The position numbers and the translations under genes are program-made. A DNA stretch of 64,000 bases from Octopus bimaculoides (taxonomy: Eukaryota): NCBI RefSeq assembly GCF_001194135.2, contig NC_068983.1:36014150-36078149 (forward strand). Direction: 5' to 3'. This document shows positions 2,132 to 59,200 of the stretch, one piece after another (position 1 is the stretch's first letter; every line of letters begins with the position of its first letter). The notes under the pieces were generated by a model. The model made no database searches, was not told the DNA's origin, and saw nothing but the letters and a program-made list of their open reading frames with translations.

Positions 2132-2171
<40 letters not shown>

Positions 2172-8100: not shown

Positions 8101-8421
8101 TTCCCTCTTTCTCAAAGGCTGTCATTACTTTCGAAACAGTACTTCTTGATACACCAAACATTTCAGCTGTTTTCATTACGCTAGCACCTGCCATACGAGC
8201 ACCAACAATTTGACCCCTTTGAAAGTCCGATAGATCTGTCATTTTAATGAATTTTAATTACCTTTTCCTGATGATATCTGAAAAGAAAAAGCAATTTTAG
8301 CAAAACATATTAAGCAACACTAATAATAAATAAAAAAAACATAAAAATAAACAAGCTTTTGATGATTGTATAGATATTTCAAAATTATGATGCTAAGTGT
8401 TTCCATTATTTTGTCCAACCC

Positions 8422-8470
<49 letters not shown>

Positions 8471-37370: not shown

Positions 37371-38515
37371 CAAGAGTGACCAATAGAATAAGTACCAGGC
37401 TTTAAAAAAATAAATACTTGAGTTAATTCATCTGATTAAAATTTCTTCAAGGCAGTGCCCCAGCATGGCCACAGTCAAATGGTTGAAACAAATAAAAGAC
37501 AAACAATAAAACTTCAATGGTTATCCAGACAATTTGAATTTCATTATGAAATAATTTGTTAGTGAGGTACAAATAATATTCCCGCTTCAGCACCTCTGAG
37601 TTTATTCACTCTAACAATAGTATCCAAATTTTGTCAACAAAATTTGATTAACTTTTGCTTCTAAGCTTGTATATCTCATTCTATGACACCACCATATCAT
37701 CCTACTGGTAACAGACAACCAGAGAGACATAATGGAGTGATATGGAAATCTACTGAATATATACTACACTCCCAAAACTTTGGAAATGAAAGTCGTTCTT
37801 CCTGAGGTATTTGCAGCTAACCATTAGACCCTTATGTAATGGAAAGTATGATTAATTAATCCTTATTTTGCAATATTTTGAAAGCCTGATGAATGAACTA
37901 ATACCAATGTCAATGACATCACTTGCTCAGGATGCAGTTAAATCAACTGCCAAACATGTTTGTAATTGAAATTAAAGAATTCAACAGGCTAAAGACGTCA
38001 CCTGAAGTGATTCAGAATTAAAACCATTTCATATGAGAAAAAACACCTAGTTGTTATTATGACATTGATTGGAGTAATAAAATGTTATTTATGACCTCAA
38101 ATAATGTGGTGACAAATGTTATGATAAATGTGAGTCTTTACTTAATCTTATGATAAATCTTAATCCTTGACTTAATGTTTCTTTATAAATCTCATATCAT
38201 TTTTACTGTTGTATATTCTCACTAATTATCATAGCTTATTGAATAAAAGATTTACTTTAAAACTTCTTACAACACATGTATAATAACTATCCATTAAATC
38301 AGTGTTTCACTGAAGATCATAAATATCTCTGTACAGGTACAAAAAAAAATTTTATGGCTTTAGAATCTTTGTTATCCATCTCCTCCATCAATCACGTTAT
38401 CTTGTACATTGAATAAAGGGTCATAATAAGACGTATAACTGGTGACACTAAAACTGTAAACAGGGGAAGGCTGTAATATTGCAGGTAAAATGTGAAATCT
38501 CGAATTGACATGATG

Positions 38516-38870
38516 TCAAAGATTCTGAGGGTACCTCGGCTGGATGGGGGTAGACATCTGGTTCGCCAGTAAAACAGAACATTCTGGAAATATGCGGTAT
38601 CGTGTTGTTTTGAAAGAATCATTCCCTAGAAATAAAATTCAATAAATAATTTAAATTTTATACAAACAAACAAATGAAGGTTAAAAATACAAAATACTTC
38701 AAAATTGATCTGATATTTAACATTCAAAATGGTGTATATGCACACACATGTACAATTTCCTGTCATGTCATCTAAACCCTGAACTCTGTCTGAAATGTCA
38801 GAAACTCTATTTCCAATGGCAATTTTATCTCTATTCTTTCTGTCACATTTTTCAAACAACACAAGTTTTG
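38516..38870 (-). CDS. Tentative last two coding exons of the uncharacterised membrane protein
   Basis: Exon 38870-38778 (acceptor TTCTCCTTCAG, weak donor GTTTAG; AKLVLFEKCDRKNRDKIAIGNRVSDISDRVQ) and exon 38625-38516 (acceptor TTTTATTTCTAG; GNDSFKTTRYRIFPECSVLLANQMSTPIQPRYPQNL*) both continue the phase-1 frame. No homology support; a 407-nt N gap lies just upstream. Confidence 0.4.
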
Positions 38871-41524
38871 CTGAAGGAGAACCCTACCAAATCTTCTGGG
38901 GTTTTGTTTGATACACAAACACACTCATACATACATACAGATATATATANNNNNNNNNNNNNNNNNNNNNNNNNNNNNNNNNNNNNNNNNNNNNNNNNNN
39001 NNNNNNNNNNNNNNNNNNNNNNNNNNNNNNNNNNNNNNNNNNNNNNNNNNNNNNNNNNNNNNNNNNNNNNNNNNNNNNNNNNNNNNNNNNNNNNNNNNNN
39101 NNNNNNNNNNNNNNNNNNNNNNNNNNNNNNNNNNNNNNNNNNNNNNNNNNNNNNNNNNNNNNNNNNNNNNNNNNNNNNNNNNNNNNNNNNNNNNNNNNNN
39201 NNNNNNNNNNNNNNNNNNNNNNNNNNNNNNNNNNNNNNNNNNNNNNNNNNNNNNNNNNNNNNNNNNNNNNNNNNNNNNNNNNNNNNNNNNNNNNNNNNNN
39301 NNNNNNNNNNNNNNNNNNNNNNNNNNNNNNNNNNNNNNNNNNNNNNNNNNNNNNNNGTGTGTGTATGGACGAGGATAGTTGTGTAAAGAAGTAGTTCTAG
39401 GAGTAGTTGGCGTTAGGAAGGGCATCAAGCTGTAGAAATCATGCCAAATCAGACTAGAGTCTGGTGCAGCCCCTCAGCTTACTAGCCTTGGTCAAACCGT
39501 CCAACCCATGCCAACATGGACAACGGACATTAAATGATGATGATGATGATGATGTGTGTGTGTGTGCATGTGTGTGTATTTTACATATATATTCATTTAT
39601 CTACATGTGTTTTCATGCTTGCATGTTGCATGAACATTTTATTTAAGGTAGTCTTTTATAGCTGGATGCCTTTCCTGATGCTAACCTTCACCTGTTTTGC
39701 AAGAAGAAATCACTTATTCTACACAGCTTTAAAGGCATGAAGTGTCTGAATGATTTTTTGACAGGACAAACAGAGAAGAACACTGCCTGTAATACTTTCT
39801 CACATGCAATTGTATATATAAACAAGCACACAGACATACATGCAAGCATAAACAGACAGACACATACATACACAAAACAGTCGTTTCAGTATCTGTCTAT
39901 CAAATTCACTCACAAGGCTTAGGTCAGCCTGTGGCTATAGTAGAAGGCATTGCTCAAAGTGCTGCACAGTGGGACTGAACCAAAAATGATGTGGTTGGGA
40001 AGCAAACATCTCAACCACACAGCCATGTATGCACCAATGTAAACTCATTCTCATTAAAGATAAAAACCACGCAAGAAATTATTACTAATAATTACCATAA
40101 CTTCGTTTAAATAGTGGACATTCGATTCAATCAAGGCCTCTAGGTTCTGAGCAGATTTCAAGAGAAACAGCATCAAAGCAGTCCAGCAGATAATGACAGC
40201 CAATATGGAAACCCTGGAATACATAATTAATAGAAATGTGAATCTTCCCATGAACCAATTTGCTCTTTTTCCACTCATGTATCTTTAACCCTTTTGTTAC
40301 CATATTTCTGTTGAGATACTCTGTGTTTCTTCCAATTAATTTTAAATATAACAAAGAATTTACTAAAATAACTTAGTAATCATTCAGCTAGTGTTAGGAA
40401 CATAAATTGTGACTAAGGTTTGGTGGAAGATTTTAATTCAGAGCTTTTGAAAGTAAGACATTTGTACTATAGAGCCAGAGGCGGTTTCAGCCAGATTGGT
40501 ATCAAAAGGGTTAAATAAACATCATACAATCTTGTCATAAACTTTTTGCTTCTTTTTTATTATTAAATGTTGATAATTATTTTAGTAACCGTGAAATACA
40601 TACAAAATATATTTTATTGTTTTCAGGTTTATATTTAGAAATAATTTGCTATATTTAGACCTGAAGATTCATAAAAGGTTGGTCTGCTAATCCTCGTCAG
40701 CTCATAAGGATCCATAGGGCTAAGCATGTAATTATGGTATCTATAGTGTTAATCAGATGAGAGATAAAACTTTCCCTAGAGTCACTAAAATATTACAGGG
40801 AGGTCTACCTGTTTGAGAAATTGAATTCATTCTTGCTTGTCAATGAAGTACAGTCCTGTTACTTTTGTTTATAATGGTGGACTACACCATCCAATAATAA
40901 GTAACCAGGGAGAGAGGGATTGATGAGCAGCAGTATGGAGGAGTGACAACTGTGTGTATCAGATACAGAGTTCTGATGCAATTCTTTGTTACTCAGGTAG
41001 CGTGAGGGGTGAGAGGTGATGGTTGAGGGAAATGAATGCAGTTAGATCTAATGCTTTTCATTGTGGCATGGGTGACATGGTACTGTGAATAGGAAAGAAG
41101 GTGAAAGAGAGGAGAGGCTATTGAAAAGGCTGTGTGCATGTGTGTGAGGATACCTTGTGGTATTTGTTCTTTACATTTTAAGTTGAAATCCCACCATGGC
41201 CTACTTGAATAACAGACTTAATCCATCACCCAGGTTTTACACCACCATCTGCCATTTCAAGTGCCTTTGGCAGAGTCCACTCTGTTGCAAGCATTTCAGC
41301 CAGGTGTTCAGTTTGAGGATGCTTCCCTCCATCCTTTTCACCAGTTTTGGGGCCTCTGTAAAGGGTCATGGACACCATCATACTTCCTGACTAAAAGATA
41401 AAATATTAGGTTGTCAAATTAATCTCCCCATTTTAATTCTTTCCACTGTTATTTGAATTAACAAAAGATATTTTACTGAAGTGTTTTATGGGTTTTTTTT
41501 TGTAGCTCCATTCTTGCTCTACTA

Positions 41525-41764
41525 CAGTGGTTCTCAACCATTTTTGCCTATGGACCCCGTTTATTCCTATTTTACTTGGGTGGACCCTCAATATTTAAGA
41601 ATATCCAATTATATTTTTATAAGTAAATATTAAGAACTGTATCAAAATTGTTAAAATATTTTGTGTATTGTAGAAGTATAACCAAATTTATTGCACATAA
41701 ATTCTAAGAATAAAATCTTGTATGAACCTCTAACGGTCAGATGAACCCTGTCTGAGAACCTCTG
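41525..41764. mobile_element. hAT-type MITE
   Basis: TIR CAGTGGTTCTCAAC / TGAGAACCTCTG, with an 8-bp TSD CTCTACTA / CTCTACAA (7 of 8 match). Confidence 0.8.
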
Positions 41765-42544
41765 CTCTACAACTTTTGTTTATTGTTTTTGAAATCTGAA
41801 TAAATTTTACCTCTTTTCAGATGGGTGATGAAGAAGTCATCATTGTTTAACGTCTGCTGTCCATGCTGGCATGGGTTGGACAGTTTGACTGAGGACTAGC
41901 AAGCCAAGAAGCTGCACCAGGTTGCAATCTGATCCAGTGAGGTTTCTACAGTTAGATGCCTTTCCTAATGTCAACCACTCCAAGAGTGTAGTGGGTGCTT
42001 TTTATATGCCACTGGAATGGGAGCCAGTCAGGAGGCACTGGCATTGACCACACTCGAGTGATGCTTTTTATGTGCCACTGGCATGGGAGCTAGTCAGGTG
42101 GCACTAGCATTGACCATGTTCGAGTGGTGCTTTTTACATACCACTGGCACGAGAGCCAGTCAGGAGGCACTGGCATCGACCACACTTGAATGGTATTTTT
42201 TACGTGCCACCGGCACTGGCATCATACCAAGTAGAAAAAAAAATGAAAATTTATTTGACGACTCAATTTAAAAAGTTATTAAAGAATCACACATTTGGTG
42301 AAAATACAATTTTGGTGTATTTTTCAGCAAATAATAAATAGAAAAAAAACCCCCACATATAGACACAGATTTAAATAGATATCAATGAGTCATACCATCG
42401 TCTGATTCTGTTTGGTGACAATTTGTTTTTAGCATAAATACTTTCAAAGAGGTAATAAAACAGAAGCAGAACACCACATATGTACAACAAAATATAGATT
42501 TGGTAACGCCGAGAGGGATGTGACATATCAAATGATTCAGTTAC

Positions 42545-42550
42545 CTCTGC
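42545..42550 (-). other. Candidate 6-nt microexon (GCAGAG) of the uncharacterised membrane protein gene
   Basis: Minus strand reads ATTCTCTTTTCTTCTTTTAG|GCAGAG|GTAACT: a strong acceptor and a good donor 6 nt apart, frame-preserving. Confidence 0.55.
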
Positions 42551-43093
42551 CTAAAAGAAGAAAAGAGAATTATATTTACTTCACATACCACATTGTCAAA
42601 ACTGTCATCATCATCATCATTGTCAACAACAGTATCATTTTAACATGCTTTCTTTTTAATGCTACAAAGGACTGAGCATCTCTTCCTGCAATTAGATCTT
42701 TCATTATAGACACAGGTATGGATGCACAATCACCTGGCTGCAAATTCCACTTTGCAGCCAGGTGATTCTATTTTTGATATCACTGTGCAGCATCTTGGAA
42801 AGTGTCTTCTACTATAGCATCAGATTGGCCAATACATTACGAGTGGAATTTGGCAGATGGAAACTGTGTGGAAGCCTATCACATGTGCGCGCGCGTGTAT
42901 ATATATATATTTCTTTTCTTTTACTTGTTTTAATCATTGGACTGCAGCCATGCTGGAGCATTGCCTTGAAGGATTTATTTGGACAAATTTCATCCCCTTA
43001 GTATTTATTCTATTGGTTACTTTTGCCTAACCGCTAAATTATGGGGATATAAACAAACCAGTGGTGGAGGACAAACACACACTCATATACATA

Positions 43094-43560
43094 CAGGGCA
43101 TTTGAGCTAAATTTGATGACCTTTTGCCTTCTTTTTTTCAGGAATAGCTTGATGAATTGGTGAACAGTGAATGGTGCTGGAGAGCTAAAAGATTAAAGTC
43201 GTAGTTGAGAAAAAGTTCGCTGACATGGAGGACTGGAAGCCGTCAGAATATTAGAAAAAAATTATTTGCATCATGATGATTTGCACTGGGCATCAAAATG
43301 CTGACATCATGACTACTGCTCAATGCTCTGTGAACACTGTAAAGGCTGTAAGACAAGACACGGACAGCAGCAATGGAGATTAGAAAACCATGGCCAGCAG
43401 AAAAGGACACAATTGGCTCTGACTGTGTCCACACACTGGAATTCATCCTCACATCTTTGAATAAGGCCTTAGTTTCAATTCAGATGGCTATGTGAAGCTA
43501 CTGGAGACTGGAGTCAATTCCTGTCTGGAGAGAGTTGTTGTTGATGTCCATGGGGTCAGT
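43094..43560 (+). mobile_element. Degenerate maT/DD37D-like Tc1/mariner remnant
   Basis: Starts TA|CAGGGCATTTGAG. Decayed frames EAVRILEKIICIMMICTGHQNADIMTTAQCSVNTVKAVR and PHIFE*GLSFNSDGYVKLLETGVNSCLERVV resemble the recalled maT transposase N-terminus and pre-second-Asp segment. Confidence 0.7.
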
Positions 43561-43877
43561 ATATGACTAGAGTTATATTCAAGTTTTTGTGGAATTATGT
43601 AAATGAGAAGAAATGTTTTCTAGGAAAGGACAGCAGTCTAGTGCAGTGGACTTCTACCAACTGCTAAGATAGAGTGTCTCACTAAATGCACAATAAAACA
43701 GCTGCAAGAGATTTGACTTATTACTTAAGTCTTTTGTCTCCAATGAAGCATTGGCCATTGATGTTTTTGTTCCATTGTTCTTGACTTTGGCCTGCCTTTC
43801 TACCTCCTTTGTGGGTTCATGTGTTTTTTTGAGGGAATGCTTTCCTCTCCCATGTCTTGTTGATTTTAAATTATCAT

Positions 43878-44243
43878 ATAGGCTGTGTGGTAAGTAGCTT
43901 GCTTACCAACCACATGGTTCCAGGTTTAGTCCCACTGTGTGGCACTTTGGGCAAATGTCTTCTACTATAGCCTGGGGCTGACCAAAGCCTTGTGAGTGAA
44001 TTTGGTAAACGGAAACTGAAAGAAGCCCATCGTATATATGTATGTGTCTGTGTTTGTTCCCCCCCAACATCGCTTGACAACCGATGCTGGTGTGTTTACG
44101 TCCCCGTAACTTAGCGGTTCGGCAAAAGAGTCCGATAGAATAAGTACTAGGCTTACAAAGAATAAGTCCCGGGGTCGATTTGCTTGACTAAAGATGGTGC
44201 TCCAGCATGGCCACAGTCAAATGACTGAAACAAGTAAAAGAGT
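43878..44243 (+). repeat. tRNA-derived SINE, family with central GCCTTGTGAGTG(G/A)ATTTGGTAGACGGAAACTG
   Basis: tRNA-like head with a B-box-like GGTTCAGTCCC consensus, a central microsatellite and tail GCATGGCCACAGTCAAATGACTGAAAC. Other copies at ~290-652, 5858-6220, 15720-16065, 20388-20757(-), 28755-28990(-), 39880-40025(-) and 52325-52705. The central domain resembles MetaSINEs as recalled, unverified. Confidence 0.88.
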
Positions 44244-45172
44244 ATATACACATCCATTTTAACCACTCAGAAGTGGTGGTGCATATTATTCTAGCCTCTA
44301 TGCTTTGACCTGTCCAGCACTGGAGGTACTACCAGGAGTTTGTGCTCTGCTAGCATAACTCTCAAGGTCATTGAGACACACAAGCCATAAGGACTGGACC
44401 TTGTGGTGGAAAGGATTTGAGCACATGACCTACGAACGGACAGGTCAATACCTTATTCACATTGTCATTTACCATTGAAATTTGAAAAGAAATACTCACC
44501 AACAGATTTAGAAAATCTGCATGCCAGAAGACTACACTGTCATGGAATTTGTTGTAATCAGAAGATATTAAAATGGGATGACTGATGGAAAAATTATTTA
44601 GTTTCTCGGATAACAACTGTAATTTTGTAAATGTGTAACCTGAAAGGAAAGATAATGATATTTAGAGTACTGACCTCAGTTTTAATCTTCCACCAAAATT
44701 TCATATTAATTTATGTTCCAAAAAACCAGCTTAATGTTTATAGTCATTTCATTAAATTCACCAGTGCCAATGCCATATAAAAAGCACCCATGCCAGTGTC
44801 ATGTAAAAGCTTCTGTGCCAACTCCATGTAAAGAGCACCCGTTCCAGTGCCACATAATATGCACTTATGCTGGCGCCACATAACAAACACCCATGCCAGT
44901 GCTACATAAAAGGCGTCAATACACTCTGTAAAGTAGTTGGCATTAAGAAGAGTATCCAGCCATAGAAACCATGCCAAAACAGATGACTGGAACCTGGTGC
45001 AGCTCTCTAGCTGGCCGGCTTCTGTCAAACCAACCAACCAACCAACCCATGCCTACATGGAAAACAGATGGTAAATTATGAATTTCCATTATTTTCAAAA
45101 TTAATTGAAATAAAGGCAGTGCATTTCAACAGAAATATGGTAACAAAAGGGTTAATAAATAAAGTTTCTTAC

Positions 45173-46028
45173 CATGAATTTTGAAAAAGAAATAGGCGGC
45201 AACAAAAATGAGGATAGTGAAAAGGGTTATGAGTTGGAGTAGGTCAAACTTGTTTAATCTCATCTTCGCCATATCTGGCCAAATGGAGACACCACCACCA
45301 ACAGCAAGTTTACTGGAATTTTGTTTGGCAGCAGCATGTTTATCAATAAGTATTTTACGTTTTTCTTCAATAGGTCGACCTGTAAGATAAGAGTGTATTA
45401 TAACAATAAAATGTTAATTTGTTTTCTGTAGTTCAAAGTGCCGATTACCACTCCACTCTTTCTGTGCTAAAATGATCCAATGAAAGAGAGAGTGTCACAT
45501 CACAAGCATGCACTCTACTAGAAATAGCAGCCAAATCTCTTTCAAATCACATCTTACTACCTTGAAAAAAGGGAAGGACATATTGGATAAATAATAGTAT
45601 AGCTGGTGGGGACAATGGTTGAAGGCCCACTTCAGATGGCACTTTTAATGGGGTGACTGTTTTGGGTCTAATCTCTTTAATGTCTTGTAAATTTATAAGA
45701 AACCAGCAAAACAAAACAAAAAGACAATAAAATTTTTTACTTTACCTGGTGTAAGTCGTAACTGTGCTAAAGTAGGACTCACAGTTTTCTTTGAATAACC
45801 AAGTCGTGTCTTTGATTCTAATTCCTCCAGAAACTTCTGTTTGATTATATAAAAATCAATTTCTGAAGACTCTGGTGGTTCTTGTTTCTTGGACCTTTGT
45901 CTAGGCTCTGAAGCAGTTACAGCTAATGTAGGAGTGCTTAGACTGGTTTCTTTTCTCATCGGAGTACTAGACTTATGTGATATACAAGCAGTTGAAGAAA
46001 ATTCTCGTTCTCTACAGCCAGTCCGCAT
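45173..46028 (-). CDS. Uncharacterised single-pass membrane protein, coding exons 1-2 (residues 1-163)
   Basis: Exon 46073-45746 (acceptor TTTATTCAG, in-frame upstream TGA, ATG 46028, donor CCAG|GTAAAG) splices in phase 1 to exon 45379-45173 (TTACAG| ... CATG|GTAAGA). The joined frame is open and ends ...GRPIEEKRKILIDKH...LLQLITLFTILIFVAAYFFFKIH, with one ~20-aa hydrophobic helix. No family recognised. Confidence 0.8.
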
Positions 46029-46794
46029 CTTGGTAAGATATGATCATCTCTGATACAAGCTAGACAGATATTTCTGAATAAAGAATCAAAAACAAATTTA
46101 AGAGTTAATAACAGTGGTTCTCTTCAGAAATCTTACGATTGGTGGAAATGATCAGAAAGACAACCATCACTCCATTGCTTATGATGACAAAGGTTCCAGT
46201 TGATCCAACCAATGGAACAGCCTGTTTGTGAAATTAATGTGCAAGTGGCTGAGCAATCCATAGACACACGTACCCTCAGTGTAGTTCTCAGGGAGGTATA
46301 GTGAGACAAAATGTGACAAGGCTGGCCCTTTGAAATACAGGTACAACACATTTTCACCAGCCAAGTGGACAGGAGCAACGTGAAATAAAGGGAGCCAGTC
46401 AGGAGGCACTGGCAACGGCCATGATTTTATTGTGTGAGGCTGGATCTGGCCGGTTTGAATGCTAAAGTGTTAAAAAATCTTAATGCTAAAGTGTTAAAAT
46501 TAATAGATTAATTTATTAGTGGAGCACTGAACTACATTTTAAAAGTTAGTCAAGGAAAGATGGGCAGTGTCCAGGAACTTAACAGGCCCATTCAGCCTGT
46601 TGCAGTGTAGCCCGCCTGCCCTCAATATGTGCAAGTAAATGTCTTGAAGAAAAATATAGGCAGGAAGGGAATTGGTGCCTGGCTGAATGCCTGCACAATA
46701 GTGGACTCAGTTAAAGACATCAAAAGACCAGGTAATGACGTTAAATCATGCAGCTTAATGTCATTATTTGATAGCATATTACCATTGTTTGATA

Positions 46795-47163
46795 TCTGTT
46801 GGCACTCCGTCGCTTACGACGTCGAGGGTTCCAGTTGATCCGATCAACGGAACAGCCTGCTCGTGAAATTAATGTGCAAGTGGCTGAGCACTCCACACAC
46901 ACGTGTACCCTTAACGTAGTTCTCGGGGATATTCAGCGTGACACAGTGTGACAAGGCTGACCCTTTAAATTATAGGCACAACAGAAACAGGAAGTAAGAA
47001 TGAGAGAAAGTTGTGGTGAAAGAGTACAGCAGGGTTCGCCACCATCCCCTGCAGGAGCCTCGTGGAGCTTTAGGTATTTTCGCTCAATAAACACTCACAA
47101 CGCTCGGTCTGGGAATCGAAACCGCGAGTCTGCTGCCCTAACCACTGGGCCATTGCGCCTCCA
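46795..47163 (-). repeat. Near full-length tRNA-derived SINE, third family
   Basis: Minus-strand head GTGGAGGCGCAATGGCCCAGTGG (A box) ... GGTTTCGATTCCC (B box). A truncated sibling lies at 46130-46390 and a related copy at ~21500-21850. Confidence 0.85.
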
Positions 47164-47400: not shown

Positions 47401-48095
47401 GGCATCCCTACACAAGTGTACCTCACTGACTTTGTTTGCTCATAACGTCCAGGAAAATGCACATTTTTTAATGAAAATTTTTACAAATCTGCTTCAGATT
47501 ATGCAGATTTTGATTGTATCAGAATTTGCTATAAAAATGTTTTTTTTCAATGTTGGGGAGGGGACTTTCTGAAAAATTCACAAAAGTTGATTTTGTTTCT
47601 TCATAACTTTCAGAAAAATGGGAACTATTTTTTTAACGAAATTTCTACAAATACCTCTCAGATGGTATAGATTATAGTTATATCGGAATTTATGAAAAGA
47701 AAAAAAAAAGAAAAGAAAAAGTGGTGGGCTTGTACACGTAATATACTGACAAACATACCAATTTTTTTTTCGAAATTTCAAGTTTCATTTTGTGATGTGA
47801 GTCCACCAATTTTTTTTTCCATATTCATTTCCAATATAATCGTATTATACATAATTTGAAAGGTATTTATAGAAAATTTCATTGAAAAAGTTATGAGGAA
47901 ATAAAGCCAACTCGCGAGAATTTTCTGAAACTCCTCTCCCCGTCCCTAGTAAAACGTTTCCCACCAAAATCCTATATAATCGGAACCTACACCATCGAAC
48001 ATTTCATTTACAAATATCTATTTTCCTGGAAGCTATGAGGAAACAAATTCGGGTGGAGCAGGGGACCGAGGATGGTACATTTGCGTAGGTATGCC
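47401..48095. mobile_element. Non-autonomous TIR element with subterminal repeats
   Basis: TIR GGCAT(C/A)CCTAC(A/G)CAA(G/A)TGTACC at both ends, with repeated TTTGTTTCCTCATAAC motifs in both orientations. Partial relative at 32776-33080. No clear TSD. Confidence 0.7.
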
Positions 48096-48299
48096 CCCTC
48101 TTGAATTGTCCTCTGCTGTCTTTAAAAAAAAGAATACGTACTTGAAAATGTAGTCTGCGTTAAACTATGACTGAAAAGACGAGATGGCCACGGCTAGAAC
48201 GCCTTTGATCATAGGTCTGCTGGACGTGGTCTAACTGGGGCTAAACTATTCACTATCCATCCAGATAAATCCAAAAATTCTTGATTCATAAAACATTCT

Positions 48300-49080
48300 A
48301 AATTTGATCTCACCTATCTGTCAGGTAAATTAAGGGGTGTGGGTTTAATCCGCCCTTTAGGTCAAAAGCAAATATACTTCGTTGGGGGTGGAGGTGGAAT
48401 CAAATAACTGTATAATAACGAAAAGTAAAAAAGTTATTTTGCTGATTTTTGAATCTTAGACGAGCAATTAGATTACTTTTAAACGATTTGTTGTTAATGA
48501 AAAGAAACCGGATTTTCTTCTGTAAATGTTTAAAAATTACAAATTTAATTTTTTAAACTTAGCACCTTCTCAACGCAATAAAACGCAATTTTCTATTTGG
48601 TAAAGAAATTTAAAAAAACATGCCAGGAAAGTTGTTTTCATAAAAAGTTTATCAAATTGACAAAAGTAATTGAAATTATTTAAAAAGAATATTAACATAC
48701 ACACAAATGAGGCAATAATGTAGAAATGTGAAGTAAAATTAATTAAACGATACAAACCTATACTTTTGGAACATTCAGTCTGGTCAAAATATTGTCAACT
48801 TAGAACCCGTATCTAAGTTTGGAGACAATTAGTGAGTAAAAGAATATATTTATTAATAAGTGTATCAATATAAGGGTATTATTAAAATATATTTACAAAT
48901 ATATTGACTCCTCTAAAATATATTCAAACCTCTATATTTGAGTATTAACAATGAAAATTATTTAGTGATATTTAGCTAAAACGATATGCGGTTTTATTTC
49001 TGAAACTAGCTCCGGTTGTTTAAATTCCCCGCCACGAACAGGTACAGGTTTCTTTGAAAACTCGTTTGTCGACTTTGTAA
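48300..49080. promoter_or_regulatory. Putative bidirectional promoter between the membrane-protein gene (-) and CENP-H (+)
   Basis: Repeat-free, locally CpG-retaining stretch with GC-box-like CCGCCC at ~48350 and CCCCGCC at ~49027. Candidate first-exon donors point outward: GATAG|GTGAGA on the - strand at 48314 and |GTAAGT on the + strand at 49077. Confidence 0.45.
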
Positions 49081-50265
49081 GTAACTTTAGCTTTAATAAT
49101 TGATCTTTGAAAGATTTTTTTTACTACCTTTACTGAATTATGTTATGCTGTAAATTATTCTAGCGTTTGATTCTTTTGCTCTGTCGTAATGTTTGAATGT
49201 GCAGTAAATTGTAAACATTCCAGATTGGCTAAAGATAGAATTAGGAGTTGAGGTTTGGAATAAGATGAAATGGTCATGGCTAGAACGCTTTTGATCAAAG
49301 GTATACTCGATCAAGGCTGATCAAAGGAACAATTACAACTTCAACTCTTAAGTTTAATATTCTTAAGTCACAACCATTAATTCCTATCGCTCGAGCATCT
49401 CTATTTTAATTTGAGATTGTATACATCCTCCTAGATAAATGATCAGATTTACTGTTTTATTCCTGTTCAAAACCAAACTGAATGAATCAAAAGTTGTGTT
49501 TTATCAATTTCTAGTGATGTTTGTTTACTTTTTTACAAACCAGAGTTCATATTTAATTTGCATCCAAAATATAGTCGAAGCTAACATTCATTAACAGTAC
49601 AATTATTTTAAATATATATATTGTCACAGGTAGAAAATTATTTTATTTAGAAGGCCACATTGAAGTTAGCTATCATCCGACATAAGCTGCATTAAAAAAA
49701 ATATTCTTATACTGCTAAACTTATTGTTATTCTCAAAAACTAACAGTTCAAGAAAATAAAAATAAAATATTTCCTAATAAGCACCACATGGTAACTGCTT
49801 TTTCGGAAATTTATTCGTATTTCCCTATTTTAAACGTAGTTGTAATCCAAACAAATAGTTACAAGTGAAGAGAAGATTTTTCCAGTATAATAATTTCCCC
49901 CTCTAACGTTGTACTCCGTTCAGAGGGTTGCAGGTTCTTAAGTCACCACAGTGGAATTCTCACGTAGGCGTGTAAACACTTGCTTTATGCAAAGTTTTTT
50001 GATATACATATAATAATAGACTACAAATATTGTCAACTGGTAAATACATAGTCTCGTGAATGGTATTGTCAGTTAAGTCGTGGTGGAATCATGATCAGGT
50101 TGGTACATCATAAAGTCATGATATTTTAATAAAATTTACAAGGGAAAAATTATGTTTTTATAAATTTTCTTTTTTCAACCGCCCATCTTCTTGTAGCTGA
50201 TAACTAAATACATTCTTCGGATCCTTCTGATTTGGCGGGCACCATTTTTTATTCATGTTTTATTT

Positions 50266-50399
50266 GGTACTACTAAAGCAGCGCGTTCGGGTCCGCGCTG
50301 CTTTAGTAGTACCAGGGTTAGGGTTAGGATCGACCACTCAAGACTAGCTAGCGCGGACGCGCGACTGCGCGTTCGGGTCCGTGCTGCTTTAGTAGTACC
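50266..50399. mobile_element. 134-bp MITE with 20-bp TIRs and an exact 9-bp TSD (Mutator-like)
   Basis: GTTTTATTT at 50257-50265 and 50400-50408. TIR GGTACTACTAAAGCAGCGCG / CGTGCTGCTTTAGTAGTACC. Confidence 0.85.
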
Positions 50400-50509
50400 G
50401 TTTTATTTAGTGTGTTTTCTACCGAAACACTTTAAAACTTCGTATACTTGTATATTTTGTCTTATAGAACAGAGAAAAAATTTTATATTCGAAGTTATTT
50501 CATGTTAAA

Positions 50510-51110
50510 AGTTATCAGGAGAATGGGAAGGTAGATGTGACAGTATTGACTTCAGACTTAGCAGGAACCTTTTCAAAATCAGAAAGCTGCAGGCTAGTTT
50601 GTTAAGCTGTACATTCAGGACCCCCAGAAGATCTTTTCAGATCACAAGAATCAATACCTCCAGCATTAACTCTACATTACATGGGTGGGTTTGACATTTC
50701 ATGTACATGTTGGACTTGTGTTTTCATCATAGGATCCACTAAAGCTAACTACAACATGGAATTGGTTGGAAGACCAAAGAAATGGTTCAAAGACTTCTTT
50801 GAGAAGAAACTACATCAACCCTTCAAGAGTGGAAGATCACACTACATGTTGCCTGTTTTGAAAGTTTCACTGTCGAAAGTTGCGGTGGGAGTTGAAGAAA
50901 AGAGGGAGAAATGCATTCATTTAAATCCATCAGGAAATGCAAGAAGAGTTTTGTGCACACAGTTACACCTGGACTTTTCCAATCATTTACATGTATAGTC
51001 ATCAAAAAATCAACAAATGAAAGAGATGGCCATCATCAGATTCTGCAGACAACCATAAGCAAAGAGAAAGAGCAGTATTGATTCTGAACAGCCTTAAGCA
51101 GAGCAAAGGA
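50510..51110 (+). mobile_element. Decayed LINE 3' fragment
   Basis: ELVGRPKKWFKD...EEKREK resembles the RTE C-terminal GRPKKR(W/F)KD motif. Confidence 0.5.
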
Positions 51111-51217: not shown

Positions 51218-51328
51218 TGTGATTATCAGAAATGAAAGTTAAGAAATGTTATAAAAATTTTGTACAGAAAAACTGTGACGATATTGGAAATTCTCAATAA
51301 AAGGAATGTAACTCAACCAGGAAATATA
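51218..51328 (+). other. Probable non-coding 5' UTR exon of CENP-H containing upstream ORFs
   Basis: Acceptor TTGTCTTTTCAG| at 51217 and donor ATA|GTAAGA at 51329; all three ATGs meet stops inside the exon. Confidence 0.55.
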
Positions 51329-54043
51329 GTAAGAAAATATTCTTTATTTCTTCTATTAGAAAACCATTTTTATGTTAGTCATCATTACTAAATACCCTGC
51401 ATCTTTTGGTATTATTCAAAGTACAGTACTCCTTTGACTATCGCAGGTGTTACATTCCAAAACCTCCCACAGAAATGATTAAAATCTAAAAAATACAAAT
51501 ACCTATTGGCCGCAGAAACTCTGATATACTAAGAAGTCCACAATATAAATTTACATAAATTAGCCCGAAAAATCTGCGATGTATTGAGTGCGTGATAGGT
51601 GAACCATGACATACTGAGTGCGCTATCGGTGAACTGCGATATGGCAAGAGATTACTGTATAGTGAAACTACTTTCAGGTAAATAAGTGGAGGATGTAGCT
51701 TATAAACTGATCAATTTTAAAATGTTTTCATTATATATGTATAATTACAGTGCCTGTATAGAGTCTCTATAAAGACAATCTTTAAAGCTGGTTGCCTTAG
51801 TAAAAGCCTATAAATACTTAAAGCAATATTGGGACCATTTTGATAGTTTTGTTTCCATGTGATTGAATTGAACTTGATAGGTGTTCCATTAGAGTGCTTT
51901 CTTATTGTCCATGACAAAAATTTCAGTTCAATATTGCAAAGTCCATGAGGCATAAATTATGGGTATAAAACATTTTTGGAACAGCTGTTTTGGTGTCTGA
52001 TGCAATGCTGACTTGCTTTGACATCAAACATTTCCATGTTTTTCTTGTTTTAATGTTTCTCTGGTTTTCCCTCTTTTTCTCTTTATGTATGCAAGCATAT
52101 TCCTCTTTACATATGAAGAGAGGGCAAGTGTTTATCTCAATTGTATTCAGTTAATAAATTGCAATGTCTATATGTGTATGTTTCTGCACATGCATGTGTG
52201 TGTATATGTTTGACTCCAACGCCAAATAGTACTGCTACCAAAAACAGGTTCAATGTCCAGTCTGTTGTGCCAGATTGTCAGCATCCAAACAGTTATGCCT
52301 AATCATCTCATTCAAATAAATTATACAGGCGCAGGCGTGGCTGTGTGGTAAGAAGCTTGCTTCCCGACCACACGGTTCCGGGTTCAGTTCCACTGCATGG
52401 CACCTTGGGCAAGTCTCTTCTACTATAGCCTTAGGCTGACCAAAGCTTTGTGAGTGGATTTGGTAGGCAGAAACTGAAAGAAATCTGTTATATATATATG
52501 TCTGTGTGTATTTGTGTGTTTGTCCCCCCACTATCGCTTCTCAACCGCTGTTGGTGTGTATGTCCCTGTAACTTAGCAGGTCAGCAAAAGAGAGCAATAG
52601 AATAAGTACCAGGCTTACAAAGAATAAGTCCAGGGATCGATTTCTTCGACTAAAAGGTGATGCTCCAACATGGCCAGTCAAAATGAGTGAAACAACTAAA
52701 AGAATGAAAGTGCTATTTCTATCTAACTAGACTCCATGGTACATACCATGTTAAATTAAACCTTTATGTTTGTAGTAAAGGTACCTTTACCGGTATCAGC
52801 GATGAGTTACAAATTGCTGATCCTTTTGATGCTAGGCCAAAAGCTACAACTTAAAATGAATGTCCACTCTTAATTCAGAAATGTATTTCTGCAGTTAGCA
52901 ATGATTTCCAATAGAAAAAAATAGTTTACTTTAATTTCTTTCGAGCATTGGGCCTCATGGAGGCAAAGTGGCTGTGTTTCTTTTGAAAGGATCCCACGGA
53001 GGCGAGGTGGTTGAATTCCTTTCGAGTGTTGGGCCTCATGAGGCAAAGTGGCCAAGTTCCTTTCGAGCATTGGACCTCAAAGAGGCAATGATCAAAACCT
53101 TTGGCATTATGTGGTGCTTGAAAAGGAGACCCATCAAGCTGAGCAAATTCGCAGTTGTGGCAGATACTGGTGTCACGCAAATTGGCACATAAAAGCACCC
53201 ATTAAATTCTTGGAGTGGTTGGCCAAATCAGACTGGATTCTGGTGCAGCCTTCCCGCATGCCAAACTGTCAAATTGTCCAACCCATGCCAGCATGGACAA
53301 CGGGTGTTGAATGATGATGGTGATGATAATGAATTCCTATAAATGTTACAATTAAAAAAATTTCACTCTGCCTTACAGAATTCAAATTTTCAGAGTGAGT
53401 CCACAAATATTTGTGGAAAACTGTAAAGACTGATAATGATAAGTGCCAACAGCAGGGCATATAAAGCCATTTTGAAAAATGTGGAGAATTGTGGGGTAAT
53501 TTTGAGGAAATTGAGAATGTTTGAAAACTTGGTTTACTTGGAATACTAAACTGAGATATTTTTGCTGTACTGTAGAGCTGGTACTGCAGTGGTTGTAAAC
53601 ACAAGAAGTTCATAATTTTTATCAATTTTATACATCGATGCCAGTACTGCCTGACTGGCTCTCGTACCAGTGGAACATAAAAGCACCATTCGAGTGTAGT
53701 CGATGCCAGTGTTGCTTGACTGGCTCTCGTGCCAGTGACACATAAAAAGCACCCACTACACTCTTGGAGTGGTTGGTGTTAGGAAGGGCATCCAGCTGTA
53801 GAAACATTGCTAGATCAGATTGGAGCCTGGTGTAGCCTTTTGGCTTGCCAGTCCTGTCAAACCATCCAACCCATGCCAGCATGGGCAATGGACATTAAAT
53901 GGTGATGAGGACATTGTTACAGCTTATAATTAATATAGTTTAATTTTTTAATGCTGTTTCTAATTTAATATGTCTGAGTTTTCCTTAATTTGAAAATATT
54001 AGTGGTCCTCTTCTCTAAGGGGTTAAATATTATTTAACTCTAG

Positions 54044-54339: not shown

Positions 54340-54417
54340 TACATTAAGTATGATATATAGATGGCTATTATTTAACTATGTCTTTTGTTTTGTTTTTTAG
54401 GTTTTCTGCTTACAATT

Positions 54418-56224
54418 ATGTCTGAATCATCTGCTAACAAGGTTTTTTCTGAAAAAGATAAAGAACTGTTTAATGAAAATGATTTAGAGAAGTTATTAGT
54501 CATCAAATCCTCATTACGTAATCGACTGAAAGATGAAAAACTCTCTGAAAAAGCAGGTATTTGTAAATATTTACTAGTTTTTACTTTGGTTTTCTGCATT
54601 ATCATCGTTTAATGTCTATTTTCCTTCTATGCTTGCATGGGTTAGATGGAATTTGGTGAGGTAAGTGTTATACAACTGGGTCCCCTTTCAGTCATCAACC
54701 CTCACCTGTAATATTTTTCCATGGCCAGACATGGCTGATGCTGGTGTCACGTAACTGGCACCTGTATCGGTGACACATAAAATGCACCTTTCAAGCATTG
54801 GGCCTCACAGAGGCAAGGTGGCCTATGCCAGTGGCATGTGAAAAGCACTTTTCATGTGACGAATGACTGAGACCTTTGGCATTATGCTGTACTTGAGAAG
54901 AAAACCCATCAAGCCAAGTAAAATTGCAGTTGTGGCAGATACTGGTGTCATGCAAAAGGCACCCAAGCCGGTGGCACACAAAAGCACTTGTTACACTCTC
55001 AGAGTGACTGGTGTTAGAAAAGGCATCCAACCGTAGATACCATGCCAAACCAGACTGGAGTTTAGGCAATCACTCATCTGCGATGTAGGAATCTATCCTA
55101 TATCATTGATTTAGCAATCATGACATAGGAATCAAATCACCTTTGGTAATTAGACAGTCCAGAGCAAGCAGTGCCTTTCTTAGTGGCACACAACATTTAC
55201 TATAACAAGGAACAAACCTATGACCAAGTGCTTGGTAGTCCTGTAGTTTAATCTCAATCATTATACCTCCTCATCACCATCATTCTCATCATCATCAAAT
55301 GTCCTTGACATGGTTTCTAGTACCAATTACCTTAGAGAAGTGGTTCCCAAAGTGGGTGGTATTGATCCCCTGGGGGCAGTGGAAAGATCCATGGGGACAT
55401 TGAAGAAAAGTGGGATGATAATGGGGTGGCCAAAATAGGGTGATAGATGTAAAAAAAAATATTAATAGGTTAATTAGGTTTAAGTTTTATTTGTGAAATA
55501 CTGTTGTTTTGAATTTGCTGCAGAAAGTGGTCTATATTTGTAGTGGGGAGGGTTAGGCATCACTAGGAATACGACCTGGATGCCAAGGGGGCAGCAGCCC
55601 AAAAAAGTTGGGGAACCATTGCTTTAGAATGTAAACTAGGTGCATTTTTTTGTGCCAACAGCTCTAATGAAGTTGCCATGCAAATTTCAACATCATGCCC
55701 ACCTCCTGAGTAGGGAGGGGTCATATTTCTTGATATTTTTTAAAATCATAACTGGTTTATATATTGCTTAAAGAAAAACAATTTTTCTTTTGTAGAAGCG
55801 TCTGTATTAGAACCAGAAGCAGAATCTAAGTAAGTGTGGTCTGTAAAATTTTTTTTATTGTTTTCATTTTGTTAACGGTTACACCAAGGCCAACCTTGCC
55901 TTTCCTCTTTTTGAATTCGATGATGAAATAAGTACCGGTTAAGCACTGGGTCAATGTAATCCTCGAGCCCCTCTCTCCAAAATTTCAGGCCTTGTACCTA
56001 TAGTAGAAAAGATTATTATTATTGGTGGTGGTGGATTATCAGAATTGAAAAATAATGCTCTGCAGTATTTCTTTTGGTTCTTTATATTATGAATTTAAAT
56101 CTGACCATGGTCAAATTTCATCCTGTCGAGGTCAGTGAGATAAAGTACCTGTTATGTAGTAGGGTTGATGTAATCATTTAACCGTTTTTCTCCAAATTGT
56201 TAGCCTTATGCCTAAATTAGAAAC

Positions 56225-56256
<32 letters not shown>

Positions 56257-59200
56257 GATAAGATAGCAAGCTGGAAGAATCGTTAGCATGTGAGGCAGAA
56301 TGCTTTACAGCATTTTGTCCATCTGTACAGTCTTGAGTTCAAATTCTGCTGAGATTGACTTTGCCGTTCATCCTTTCGGGATTGATAAAATAAGTACCAG
56401 TTGAGCGCTGGGGCTGATGTAGTCGACTTACACCTGAATTTGCTGGCATTGTGTCAAAATTTGAAACCTGTTATTTATTATTGGTGATTTAATAGAATTG
56501 TTAATGTCAAAATTGGAAAATTAAAAACCTTATGATATTTGTTCTTTACATTTAGCATGTACATTCGGGGGGGGGGGGGTTTCAATGTTAATCAAAAAAC
56601 TTTCTGGCCTTGTATCTTTATTAGAAACAATTATTATAGCATATGACTTTAATATATGGCAGTGTAATTCTCCTAAAATACATCATTAATCAAGCTTATT
56701 TGATTGAGAAATAATTGAAATAAAAGTGAATTATATTGTCAAACTTTATTTTTTAGAATCAGTGAATTGATAAAAGAAGTCACCTTACAGACTTGTAGAG
56801 AATCACGAAGGAAGCTGATGATAGAAAGGTGAGCTTTACTCTTAAAATTACCTTTCAAGGTTATGTTTTGTCTTTTATCATTGTTGTCGATCTCACCTCC
56901 CTGCAGGACAGTCCTCATTATTCAGCTTGATTTGGAAGAAATTTGACTGTTATTATTACTAACTCGCAAAGATGGTGAGCTGGCAGAATTGTTAGCACAC
57001 CAGGCGAAATGTTTCATGGTATTTCATCCATCTTTATATTCTGAGTTCAAATTCTACCAAGGTCGACTTGTCTTTCATCCTTTCGCGGTTGATTAAATAA
57101 GTACCAGTTATGCACTGGGAGTTGATGTAACCAACTCCCACAAGCTGCCCATGTGGCAAAAATTTAAAACCATTATTACTAACTTGTAAAAAGGTTCTTT
57201 ATTGGTTCATATTACTATTTTGTTGTTTTCTGTTTATGCAACACTCCTCTATATTATTAGTTACTGACATCCATCTCTCTTTCATCATCATCATTGTTTA
57301 ATGCTGGCATGGGTTGGGCGGTTTGACTGAGGTCTGGAGAGCCAGCAGCTGCACCAGGTTCCAATCTGATCTGGCAATGTTTCTACAGCTCATTAATCTC
57401 TAAACACTTCACCGACTCCTCTTTCTAATACACTTAGTTCTCCACAAAATCATTCCATCTTTAATCTCCTTTCTGTCAACACCCCAAATGTAAAATTCTT
57501 CCCTGAAGACGGAGGCTAGTATTATCTGATGATAGAATCAATTTACAGTCATTATTTTGGACCACCAAGCCCCAAGAAACAGCTGTTGGACTTGTAATAC
57601 TCTTTTTCGACCCCTTTAATTCCTGATATCTTTTCTAGTCTAGCATGGATAACAGACGTTAAATGATGATAATGAGGATTTAACTTGTATTTTTCAGATT
57701 GCAAATTAGTCAGGTATTGATTGAAAATCTCTTTGAGAAAGATGAATCCACTGATCTCCAAGTTAGGTAAGCTTGAAATATATTTGTCTGAATAAATGCA
57801 TATCTGTTTTCTCTCTCCCTCTCTTTTCATAAATATATTTTATGATGAATTTAATCCCTTTTGAAACAAATGTTTAATATTCATTTGTTGTCTTTGTAGC
57901 AAAGAATTAGAATCATTTTTGGAAACACAACGTAAACTATCGGTAGATATTCTGAAAAAACATAAGGTAATTTTGTTTTTAGCTCTGAATTTTTTTTTCT
58001 TCAGGTGTTTCTTCTGTTATCATCTTCATCATTTAAAATGTCTGTTTTCCATGCTGGCATGGGTTGGACAGTTTGGCAGGAACTGGCCAGCTGGAGAGCT
58101 GCATCAGGCTCCAATTTTTTGTGGCTGGATACCCTTCCTAATGCCAACCACTTTTACAGAGTGTACTGGTTGCTTTTTATGTGGCACCAGCATGGTAATG
58201 ATCTGTTTGCAGGAAGCATAAATTATGTTTTGTTGCAGTGTAGATATCCATTTTTATATTCTTGGCCGATTTGTTCTTTATTGAATGCAATCTAGAATGA
58301 ATCTTGCATTTTTTATACCAGGCGTTTGTGATGTGTTTTTCTGATGAACTATTTTACTGACATCAACAGCATTCTGGAATATCATTGTTGGCAAAACAAG
58401 TCTCAATCAAAATATTGGGCTGATTTAATTGATGGGAGCCCTCCTCTAAAAATGTGGCCTGGGTTGTATTAAATAGTTGAAGGAACTAAATGCTGTTTCC
58501 CCTACTCTCAAAGATGTGCAGAAGCACTTTTGCAAGTGTCATGCAAAAAGCACAGTATACTCTGTAAAGTGGTAGACATTAAGAAGGGTACATATTATCA
58601 TCATCATGCGTCTGTTGGCATGGGTTCGACGGTTTGACTGGGTTGGCATACTGCACCAGACTCCCGTCTGATTTGGTATGGTTTTCTATGGGTGGATGCC
58701 AACCACTCTGAGAGTGTAATGGGTGCTTTTACGTGCCACCGGCATGACACCCGGGTGCGTTTGTATATATACATAGAGAAATATGCTATTATTAATAATA
58801 ATAATATTAGTGGCCAAAGCGTGAACCGAACAGGCAAGTTTAAAAATACCAACTTTGCTATAAATAGGAGTGAAATATACTCTAATGAGCATCCAGCCTT
58901 AGAAACCATGCCAAAACAGACATTTAGAGCCTGGGTAGCTCTCCAACTAGTCAGCTTGTGTCAAACCATCCAGCCCATGCCAGCATGGGAAACAGACGTA
59001 TGATGATGATGTATTTGAGAAAGGCACCGATATCCACTTTGTTGCAAGCTTTTGGGTCAGCTCTGCGGTTTGTAGGGACCTCCTTCCCTTTGACCAATCT
59101 CGGAAACTTTGTAAAGGGTCATAGACACTGCAATCCTCTGCTGACGAAATTTAAAAAAAGACAAAAACCCCTGCCAAGTTAGTTATTTCATACTGTTACC

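Follow-up and report, generated by a model that had tools for sequence, protein, structure and literature searches.

Several families of membrane proteins cross the bilayer four times. In the tetraspanins and in the claudin/PMP22, MARVEL/occludin, connexin/CALHM and Orai families, four transmembrane (TM) helices are combined with cytosolic termini and two exoplasmic loops, and some of these classical tetraspan families carry long regulated cytosolic tails. A different set of membrane proteins, including LBR, LAP2-beta, lunapark and STIM1, resides in the endoplasmic reticulum (ER) or nuclear envelope and is phosphorylated in mitosis. With respect to gene order, classic bidirectional promoters have a signature spacing of less than 1 kb. 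Among gene pairs conserved since ancient times, 5'-5' orientation, short spacing and co-expression are over-represented (Irimia et al. 2012, PMC3514665; CENP is absent from the main text of that paper). Here we describe a gene of Octopus bimaculoides that encodes a protein with four TM-length segments and lies head-to-head with CENP-H. It is located in a stretch of 64,000 nucleotides (NC_068983.1, positions 36,014,150 to 36,078,149 of the forward strand), which we refer to as the window and within which all coordinates are counted.

An initial annotation of the window had proposed a single-pass, possibly lineage-restricted membrane protein of no assignable family, with cyclin-dependent kinase (CDK) sites in its N-terminus and CENP-H as its head-to-head neighbour. 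Our analysis bears out the description of the N-terminus and of the first TM helix, the lack of a recognised family and CENP-H as the neighbour, but not the single pass, the short C-terminal tail or the lineage restriction. We tentatively propose that the gene encodes a phospho-regulated tetraspan membrane protein that is co-transcribed with CENP-H, and we weigh this proposal against its rivals below.

The gene and its predicted protein

We found that the octopus locus is an intact gene of six exons on the minus strand, extending from 46028 to 38392. When the exons are joined along canonical splice signals (GT-AG at all five introns), they form a coding sequence of 1137 nt for 378 aa, in which the only stop is the terminal one. 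The exons, with the predicted parts of the protein that they encode, and an assembly gap are located as follows.

Exon 1, 45746..46028, minus strand: 283 nt; ATG 46028-46026; codons 1-94 plus 1 nt; donor GTAAAG; disordered Ser/Thr/basic N-terminus with T22-P, T32-P, S84-P and T93-P
Exon 2, 45173..45379, minus strand: 207 nt; acceptor TTACAG, donor GTAAGA; conserved helix 96-114 (K108, H109), invariant juxtamembrane motif VGGGVSxWPxMxxMRL (G122-L136) and TM1 (~141-163)
Exon 3, 44500..44639, minus strand: 140 nt; acceptor TTTCAG, donor GTGAGT; first lumenal/extracellular loop including the invariant W202-H203
Exon 4, 42396..42550, minus strand: 155 nt; acceptor TTTTAG, donor GTATGA; last part of loop 1, then TM2 (~228-250) and a basic loop on the cytosolic side, AKNKL[S/T]PxRI[K/R]xW, with the invariant [S/T]-P-x-R at S255
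Exon 5, 40096..40213, minus strand: 118 nt; acceptor TTCCAG, donor GTAATT; TM3 (~261-283) and a helical extension with the invariant E287
Exon 6, 38392..38625, minus strand: 234 nt including the TGA stop 38394-38392; acceptor TTCTAG; second lumenal loop (YWRTRCLPP) and TM4 with the motif YYLQYYSLPxxTxLxTP
Assembly gap, 38950..39356, no strand: 407 N within intron 5 (38626-40095), with microsatellite-like low-complexity flanks

The start of exon 1 agrees with that of the orthologue from Octopus vulgaris (P0001). As an AG directly precedes the ATG at 46028, a non-coding 5' exon may lie farther upstream.

The 407-N gap and the many SINE-like (short interspersed nuclear element) repeats in the introns could suggest an artefact or pseudogene, in which an open reading frame (ORF) was stitched over the gap or from repeat-derived exons. 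However, the gap is intronic, the coding sequence is open and the splice sites are canonical. The junction between exons 5 and 6 (codons 301/302) is in frame, the O. vulgaris protein is likewise 378 aa long (96 % identity at 100 % coverage), and in abalone, priapulid, sea star, catshark and arowana the exons matching codons up to 301 and from 302 are consecutive. We thus conclude that the gap hides no coding exon. Intron positions are also common across phyla. The octopus introns lie at codons 95, 164, 210/211, 262 and 301/302; abalone and priapulid have introns at all five of these positions, and scallop, sea star, catshark and arowana at the majority. Abalone, scallop, priapulid and shark share the one at codon 95, and the vertebrate orthologues carry two additional introns. 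For this comparison, exon limits from tblastn in eight species were mapped through an alignment of 29 family members, which gives a resolution of a few residues. Furthermore, the family is transcribed. The cuttlefish orthologue (P0003, 54 % identity) was found as an uninterrupted ORF of 391 codons, preceded by in-frame stops in the 5' untranslated region, on contigs of ~2 kb in 104 blocks of Logan, a collection of sequencing-run assemblies. Six source runs of these contigs were looked up and belong to published transcriptome studies of Sepia esculenta larvae or juveniles, so that a spliced mRNA of this family exists in cephalopods, as the initial annotation would lead one to expect. The artefact reading is thus already refuted.

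The same holds for the single-pass protein with a short lumenal tail, which had been suggested to be a lineage-restricted component of the inner nuclear membrane or ER. Exons 1 and 2 alone do give an N-terminal tail and one TM helix, but four more in-frame exons with canonical splice sites follow and add three TM helices, and all orthologues, from sponge to vertebrates, are full-length proteins with four TM helices. Instead of a C-terminal tail of ~70 aa, 215 residues follow TM1. The lower boundary given previously, 38516, corresponds to an out-of-frame TGA within the true last exon; the short tail was therefore probably read in the wrong frame. This model is already refuted for the main product, and only a minor truncated isoform could rescue it.

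The protein contains four hydrophobic segments of TM length (~141-163, 228-250, 261-283 and 353-374), and its hydrophilic N-terminus has no signal peptide. The ordered peptide blocks, the first hydrophobic helix and the missing signal peptide had all been described correctly. In the alignment of 29 sequences, which reaches from sponge to shark, 26 columns are invariant and 22 nearly so. The conserved block SPTLxxLRxTPGR contains S84-P and T93-P. Further conserved elements are K-L-[S/T]-P-x-R-I-[K/R]-x-W between TM2 and TM3, Y320-W321 and (C)LPP in the second loop, and a polar/aromatic motif in TM4 (Y348, Y352, P355 and P363 invariant, Y351 and T358 nearly so). The loop between TM2 and TM3 has a mean net charge of +4.4 and contains no acidic residue. 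By the positive-inside rule, this loop and both termini would be cytosolic and the two long loops lumenal or extracellular; the charge distribution thus indicates an N-in/C-in protein with two loops of ~65 residues facing the lumen or the outside. Neither a conserved Cys pair nor a conserved N-glycosylation sequon is present in the two long loops of the 29 sequences, where a lone Cys is conserved (C325, 21/29).

An AlphaFold2 model built from the 29-sequence alignment has a pLDDT of 85-95 over residues 138-375 and below 50 over residues 1-56, and the first ~135 residues are mostly disordered. The predicted helices of TM1 (138-178) and TM3 (256-305) reach well past the membrane, and these extensions, together with helices 192-217 and 312-325, are predicted to form a helical cap. 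When compared to the PDB with Foldseek, two models gave no significant match (best E 0.48 for model 1 and 0.58 for model 2). The recurrent matches (ExbB/TolQ, SPX-domain proteins and 14-3-3) were rejected as generic helical bundles. An internal duplication of two TM-helix-TM halves was rejected at the sequence level (hhalign probability 0.08 %).

These features bear on two alternatives to a phospho-regulated partner of CENP-H. First, the protein could be a tetraspan of the cell surface or of another organelle, such as a channel subunit, a transporter accessory protein, a receptor or an adhesion scaffold, that has no functional tie to the cell cycle. Surface tetraspans typically have an N-in/C-in layout and two large exoplasmic loops, and the invariant polar/aromatic motif of TM4 might line a pore or binding site. 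However, loops that lack conserved Cys pairs and sequons are unusual for surface tetraspans. Second, the protein could be a membrane enzyme or small-molecule binder with a site in the lumenal cap, formed by the invariant W202-H203, E287 and W321 and the nearly invariant Y320. This would agree with the occurrence of invariant polar and aromatic residues in both lumenal loops and in the TM3 extension, and with the confident prediction of the cap region. Yet neither Pfam nor the PDB, searched by sequence and by fold, shows similarity to an enzyme family, and the invariant residues lie on both faces of the membrane (H109 and R258 on the cytosolic one). We therefore consider an enzyme or binder unlikely. 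The surface or organellar tetraspan is taken up again below with the evidence from gene order and from the N-terminal tail.

Family membership and taxonomic range

A search with the octopus protein detected 14 full-length relatives (E 3e-239 to 1e-57, query coverage 77-100 %, identity 34-96 %). The same relatives were recovered with a profile search of 1.84 billion representatives, which returned 194 sequences at E <=1e-3, about 20 of them full length and the remainder exon-sized fragments. Family members have ~350-420 aa and are named only 'uncharacterized' or 'hypothetical' in the databases, including the orthologues from Pecten maximus (LOC117334186), Acanthaster planci (LOC110977291) and Scyliorhinus canicula (LOC119970645). 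The octopus protein has all signature motifs of the family: VGGGVSxWPxMxxMRL, W-H in loop 1, [S/T]PxRI[K/R]xW, YW..(C)LPP and YLQYYSLP..T..TP.

The suggestion that the protein is lineage-restricted does not hold, as the family ranges from sponge to sharks and coelacanth. Among invertebrates, we found members in cephalopods, gastropods, bivalves, a brachiopod, an annelid, a priapulid, sea stars, a sea cucumber and the calcareous sponge Sycon; among chordates, they occur in amphioxus, many sharks, bichirs, the early-branching teleosts arowana, bonefish and a deep-sea eel, and coelacanth (partial model). No tetrapod, clupeocephalan teleost, insect or nematode is among the sources of all full-length hits. 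Shark proteins score at ~1e-112, so that tetrapod orthologues would have stood out. The family thus appears to have been lost, or to have diverged extremely, in tetrapods, clupeocephalan teleosts, insects and nematodes.

As had been stated from the window alone, the protein cannot be assigned to a family. No Pfam family reaches its gathering threshold for the octopus protein or for 20 other members (21 scanned), and a PDB sequence search, with the single protein as well as with the profile, returned nothing. DUF6097 (19.8 vs a cut-off of 27.5 bits), MnhB (14.8 vs 22.5) and DUF4149 remained below threshold and were driven by TM composition. The UniRef label 'Gustatory receptor' on one sea-slug member has no support from a Pfam domain. 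Further candidates (TMEM237, Orai, NEMP, TMEM43 and MARVEL/occludin, which is located near CENPH in human) were not among the Pfam hits and were set aside. Literature searches by twelve locus identifiers of the family, and for CENPH together with a bidirectional promoter, returned no paper on the family in the library searched. Judged by these searches, which exclude AlphaFold DB, PANTHER and HHpred, the protein appears to belong to an old animal family that is part of no described one.

Pairing with CENP-H

To compare gene order, loci were fetched from eight further species; gene ranges are from ATG to stop, head-to-head distances are between ATGs, and CENP-H refers to the gene with PF05837.

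Octopus (the window): head-to-head with CENP-H, 8.4 kb ATG to ATG
Pecten maximus (bivalve, scallop): head-to-head with CENP-H, 5.7 kb ATG to ATG
Haliotis rufescens (gastropod, abalone): head-to-head with CENP-H, 4.5 kb ATG to ATG
Acanthaster planci (echinoderm, sea star): head-to-head with CENP-H, 7.0 kb ATG to ATG
Scyliorhinus canicula (shark, catshark): head-to-head with CENP-H, 9.0 kb ATG to ATG
Scleropages formosus (teleost, arowana): adjacent on the same strand, 0.8 kb from the CENP-H stop to the ATG
Branchiostoma (amphioxus): CENP-H not within 10 kb; RTE1-family gene upstream
Priapulus caudatus (priapulid): CENP-H not within 10 kb; unrelated 1105-aa gene
Polypterus senegalus (bichir): CENP-H not within 10 kb; transposase gene upstream

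We observed that the adjacency to CENP-H spans phyla; the pairing is ancient. The head-to-head arrangement with CENP-H that had been noted in octopus recurs in scallop, abalone, sea star and catshark, which strengthens the idea that the two genes are co-regulated. If the adjacency were only ancestral linkage, passive or promoter-shared and without a common function, as a tetraspan unrelated to cell division would imply, the retention of the 5'-5' orientation in three phyla would go beyond the usual neutral scrambling (PMC3514665).

The fetched loci show some further features. In both Scyliorhinus and Polypterus, a gene with a CARD domain follows downstream on the opposite strand, so that vertebrate synteny also extends to this side. 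The gene downstream in Pecten encodes a dual oxidase (DUOX-type). In the Polypterus locus, two copies of the exons for codons 211-262 and for codons 302-378 lie ~8.8 kb apart (~21.8-36.3 kb) and the exon for codons 263-301 has a second, partial copy; either the 3' half of the gene has been duplicated in tandem or the assembly is at fault here. The amphioxus model (P0029, Branchiostoma hybrid assembly, ~10.5-11.1 kb) contains the exon-2 segment GGGVSLWPQMDNMRL and TM1 twice, either through a local duplication or possibly because haplotypes were wrongly joined.

In the window, the identity of CENP-H is supported by the ORF at 60827-60985 on the plus strand, which represents the last exon alone and scores 34.7 bits against PF05837 (cut-off 29.9). 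CENP-H peptides of O. vulgaris map to seven coding exons on the plus strand, from 54418 to 60988. The features of this gene and of the intergenic region are as follows.

Block without CpG depletion, 47501..50750, no strand: observed/expected 0.8-1.46, with nearly all other 500-nt windows below 0.6
Probable 5' exon of CENP-H (3' end mapped), 51300..51329, plus strand: donor AAATATA followed by gtaaga; joins the ATG exon in frame
ATG exon of CENP-H, 54401..54556, plus strand: ATG 54418-54420; peptide MSESSANKVFSEKDKELFNENDLEKLLVIKSSLRNRLKDEKLSEKAG; ~95 % identity to O. vulgaris P0198
Other coding exons of CENP-H, 56770..60988, plus strand: 74-95 % identity to the O. vulgaris 'centromere H-like' protein P0197
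Approximate tblastn limits of these exons, plus strand: 56770-56829, 57684-57764, 57898-57972, 60025-60078, 60655-60756 and 60833-60988 (with stop)

The octopus gene and CENP-H are divergent, with 8.39 kb between their ATGs. A polypyrimidine tract and an AG precede the ATG exon of CENP-H, and an acceptor-like AG is found at this position in octopus, sea star and abalone. The match of the 5' exon to O. vulgaris P0198 covers 8 aa (100 % identity, E 0.18) and is tentative; with a GT donor at 51329, this upstream exon would place the start of CENP-H transcription at or before ~51.3 kb. In the O. vulgaris annotation, the first coding exon belongs to a 70-aa 'hypothetical' protein that is modelled separately from the 166-aa 'centromere H-like' protein. 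As both are colinear in the window, they are probably one gene.

We scanned the CpG content in 500-nt windows over 36-64 kb, where 47.5-50.75 kb is the only extended block without CpG depletion. The sea star locus likewise has one CpG-rich block between both ATGs. The segment 47501-50750 is thus a candidate for an unmethylated promoter region shared by the two genes.

Several elements within or near this region are of separate interest. At 50260-50400, two TTAGGG-like units (agggttagggttagg) come after a perfect GC-rich palindrome of 20 nt (GGTACTACTAAAGCAGCGCG...CGCGCTGCTTTAGTAGTACC), and a partial second copy of the palindrome arm comes after them. This element, which gives the highest CpG observed/expected value (1.46) of the scan, may represent the end of a transposon or have a regulatory function. 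At 50606-50995 on the plus strand, a 130-codon stop-free stretch between the genes has no Pfam match and is probably non-coding or repeat-derived. In the inter-ATG region of Scyliorhinus (961-10000 of the locus), CCAAT occurs 39 times vs ~19 expected, and the four invertebrate loci show no such surplus; either repeats or a genuine cluster of NF-Y sites could account for the high count.

The window as a whole is AT-rich and contains many SINE-like repeats, microsatellites and N-run gaps. The introns and the intergenic region are dense in SINE-like and short tandem repeats (41994-42215, 44750-44912, 46168-46983 and others), including 66-nt tandem units at 41994-42215, a 181-nt pair of copies at 46168 and 46803, and repeat copies common to 39.4-44.2 kb and 52.3-53.9 kb. 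A remnant of a Tc1/mariner-type transposase lies at 7375-8121 on the minus strand (HTH_Tnp_Tc3_2, PF01498, 46 bits), and an adjoining ORF contains a DDE-like stretch, 'DDNAPNH'. At ~62.5-62.6 kb, a second short N run lies within a (CATA/TATA)-type microsatellite and appears as X runs in ORF translations. Rfam and tRNA scans of the window returned nothing.

Phosphorylation candidates and comparison with known systems

Exactly four sites of serine or threonine followed by proline (S/T-P) precede TM1 in the octopus protein (T22 TPMR, T32 TPTL, S84 SPTL and T93 TPGR), so that the earlier description of a Ser/Thr/basic-rich N-terminus with four such sites, including TPMR and TPGR, is accurate. Across the family, the N-terminus has 4-9 S/T-P sites per member vs ~1-2 expected from composition, and in 27/29 members the observed count is reached by fewer than 5 % of shuffles that preserve composition; the octopus protein is one of the two exceptions (fraction 0.07). 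Three of the four octopus sites are conserved across phyla: S/T-P is found in 25/29 sequences at the T32 column, in 28/29 at S84 and in 28/29 at T93, with S and T interchanging at T32 and T93. Concerning the two full CDK sites that had been proposed, the TPGR column is thus conserved as S/T-P and has the full S/T-P-x-K/R in 16/29, whereas TPMR is octopod-only. A further site that had been missed is S255, where [S/T]-P-x-R is present in 29/29 with S and T interchanging. In addition, a second column, at E41 of octopus, has T/S-P in 24/29 sequences, E-P in three octopod sequences and R-P in cuttlefish. The position of a potential phospho-acceptor in other lineages is thus occupied by an acidic residue in octopods.

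The sites differ in their surroundings. A predicted helix starts at most three residues downstream of S84, T93 and S255, and S255 directly precedes the predicted TM3 helix. The columns of T32 and its neighbour sit in disordered and otherwise unconserved sequence without a helix nearby. From the sequence context, we regard T32 and the neighbouring TP column as the best candidates for phosphorylation sites, with the caveat that an aligner can line up short dipeptides by chance.

Based on these observations, the gene possibly encodes a phospho-regulated tetraspan membrane protein that is co-transcribed with CENP-H. With moderate confidence, we suggest that the N-terminal tail would serve as a regulatory module switched by proline-directed kinases (CDK or mitogen-activated protein kinase, MAPK, type). 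The gene and CENP-H would be transcribed in opposite directions from a common intergenic region that is unmethylated. Again with moderate confidence, this shared regulatory DNA would lead to the expression of both genes in dividing cells, and the 5'-5' pairing would have been kept because a shared control region is hard to split. More speculatively, and by analogy to LBR-like proteins, the protein may be a scaffold under mitotic regulation, and not an enzyme, and may reside in an internal membrane, either that of the ER or the nuclear envelope.

Several findings weigh against this proposal. The T22 column has S/T-P in only 4/29 sequences, and S255 lies ~5 residues from the membrane on either side. 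S/T-P is common as a helix cap; S84, T93 and S255 may thus be structural caps near helix starts and not phosphorylation sites. The absence of CENP-H within 10 kb in amphioxus, priapulid and bichir and the tandem order in arowana mean that the pairing is not obligatory. The distances between ATGs are 4.5-9 kb, and tetrapods keep CENP-H yet appear to be without this family. Finally, counts of CCAAT, CHR (cell-cycle genes homology region) and E2F motifs in five inter-ATG regions show no consistent enrichment over block shuffles.

Most of these points would be expected of the surface or organellar tetraspan without a functional cell-cycle tie, for which S/T-P sites would be helix caps or generic MAPK or short linear motif (SLiM) sites. 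This alternative accommodates the position of S84, T93 and S255 at or just before predicted helix N-termini, the broken linkage of amphioxus and priapulid and the inverted one of arowana, the wide spacing, the negative motif scan and the retention of CENP-H in tetrapods. It does not readily explain why the T32 column and the next TP column are conserved in 24-25/29 sequences although they are disordered and no helix is nearby. We consider the two explanations about equally likely. A stronger variant of the proposed link to cell division is that an ancestral membrane protein works with the constitutive centromere/kinetochore network under CDK control and has been kept beside CENP-H for this reason. 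Such a protein may connect the membranes of the ER or nuclear envelope with centromeres or kinetochores, or steer membranes around chromosomes, and would have been overlooked because it appears lost from tetrapods, flies, nematodes and the teleosts in common use; we regard this variant as rather improbable.

The two notable points of this locus are the conserved pairing with CENP-H and the apparent absence of the family from standard model animals. The family is strongly conserved (26 invariant positions), yet no member was found in the animals that are central to cell biology, which would explain why it has not been studied. Its novelty lies in belonging to no described family and not in the demonstration of a new kind of biology. 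The 5'-5' pairing with CENP-H in molluscs, an echinoderm and a vertebrate gives a testable hypothesis of co-regulation and of phospho-control of the tail, for which sea-star oocytes and embryos and scallop or snail embryos are tractable systems. If the link to cell division is true, the family is a component of animal mitosis or meiosis that has been lost from model organisms; if it is false, what remains is an orphan membrane family of deep conservation, together with a microsyntenic pair of ancient origin.

When comparing the octopus protein to known systems, we find partial likenesses to several of them. Long helices that project from the membrane are also found in ExbB/TolQ stators, and DUF6097 and MnhB are similar in composition over TM2-TM3. 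We treated these matches as chance and not as kinship, given Foldseek E values >=0.48, query-normalised TM-scores <=0.25 and sub-threshold Pfam scores. The protein resembles LBR, LAP2-beta, lunapark and STIM1 in that a disordered, basic, S/T-P-rich N-terminal region appears to be set on a membrane anchor. However, no relationship in sequence or structure to these proteins was detected, and TM number and loop architecture differ. With the classical tetraspan families, the octopus protein appears to share four TM helices, cytosolic termini and two exoplasmic loops. Its family, however, has no Pfam hit to any of them in 21 scanned members and no conserved Cys pairs, its loops are predicted helical extensions of TM1 and TM3, and the protein has no fold match in the PDB.

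Regarding gene order, the pair with CENP-H is similar to pairs of the HSPE1-HSPD1 type (PMC3514665) in its divergent orientation across phyla and in an interval that is short vs genome averages. It differs from them by an ATG to ATG distance of 4.5-9 kb instead of less than 1 kb, and it is broken in some lineages. The closest systems are the unnamed orthologues, for which no source names the function of any member. They align over their full length, have the same four TM helices, invariant motifs and five intron positions and, in several species, the same CENP-H neighbour, and we find no essential difference between them and the octopus gene.

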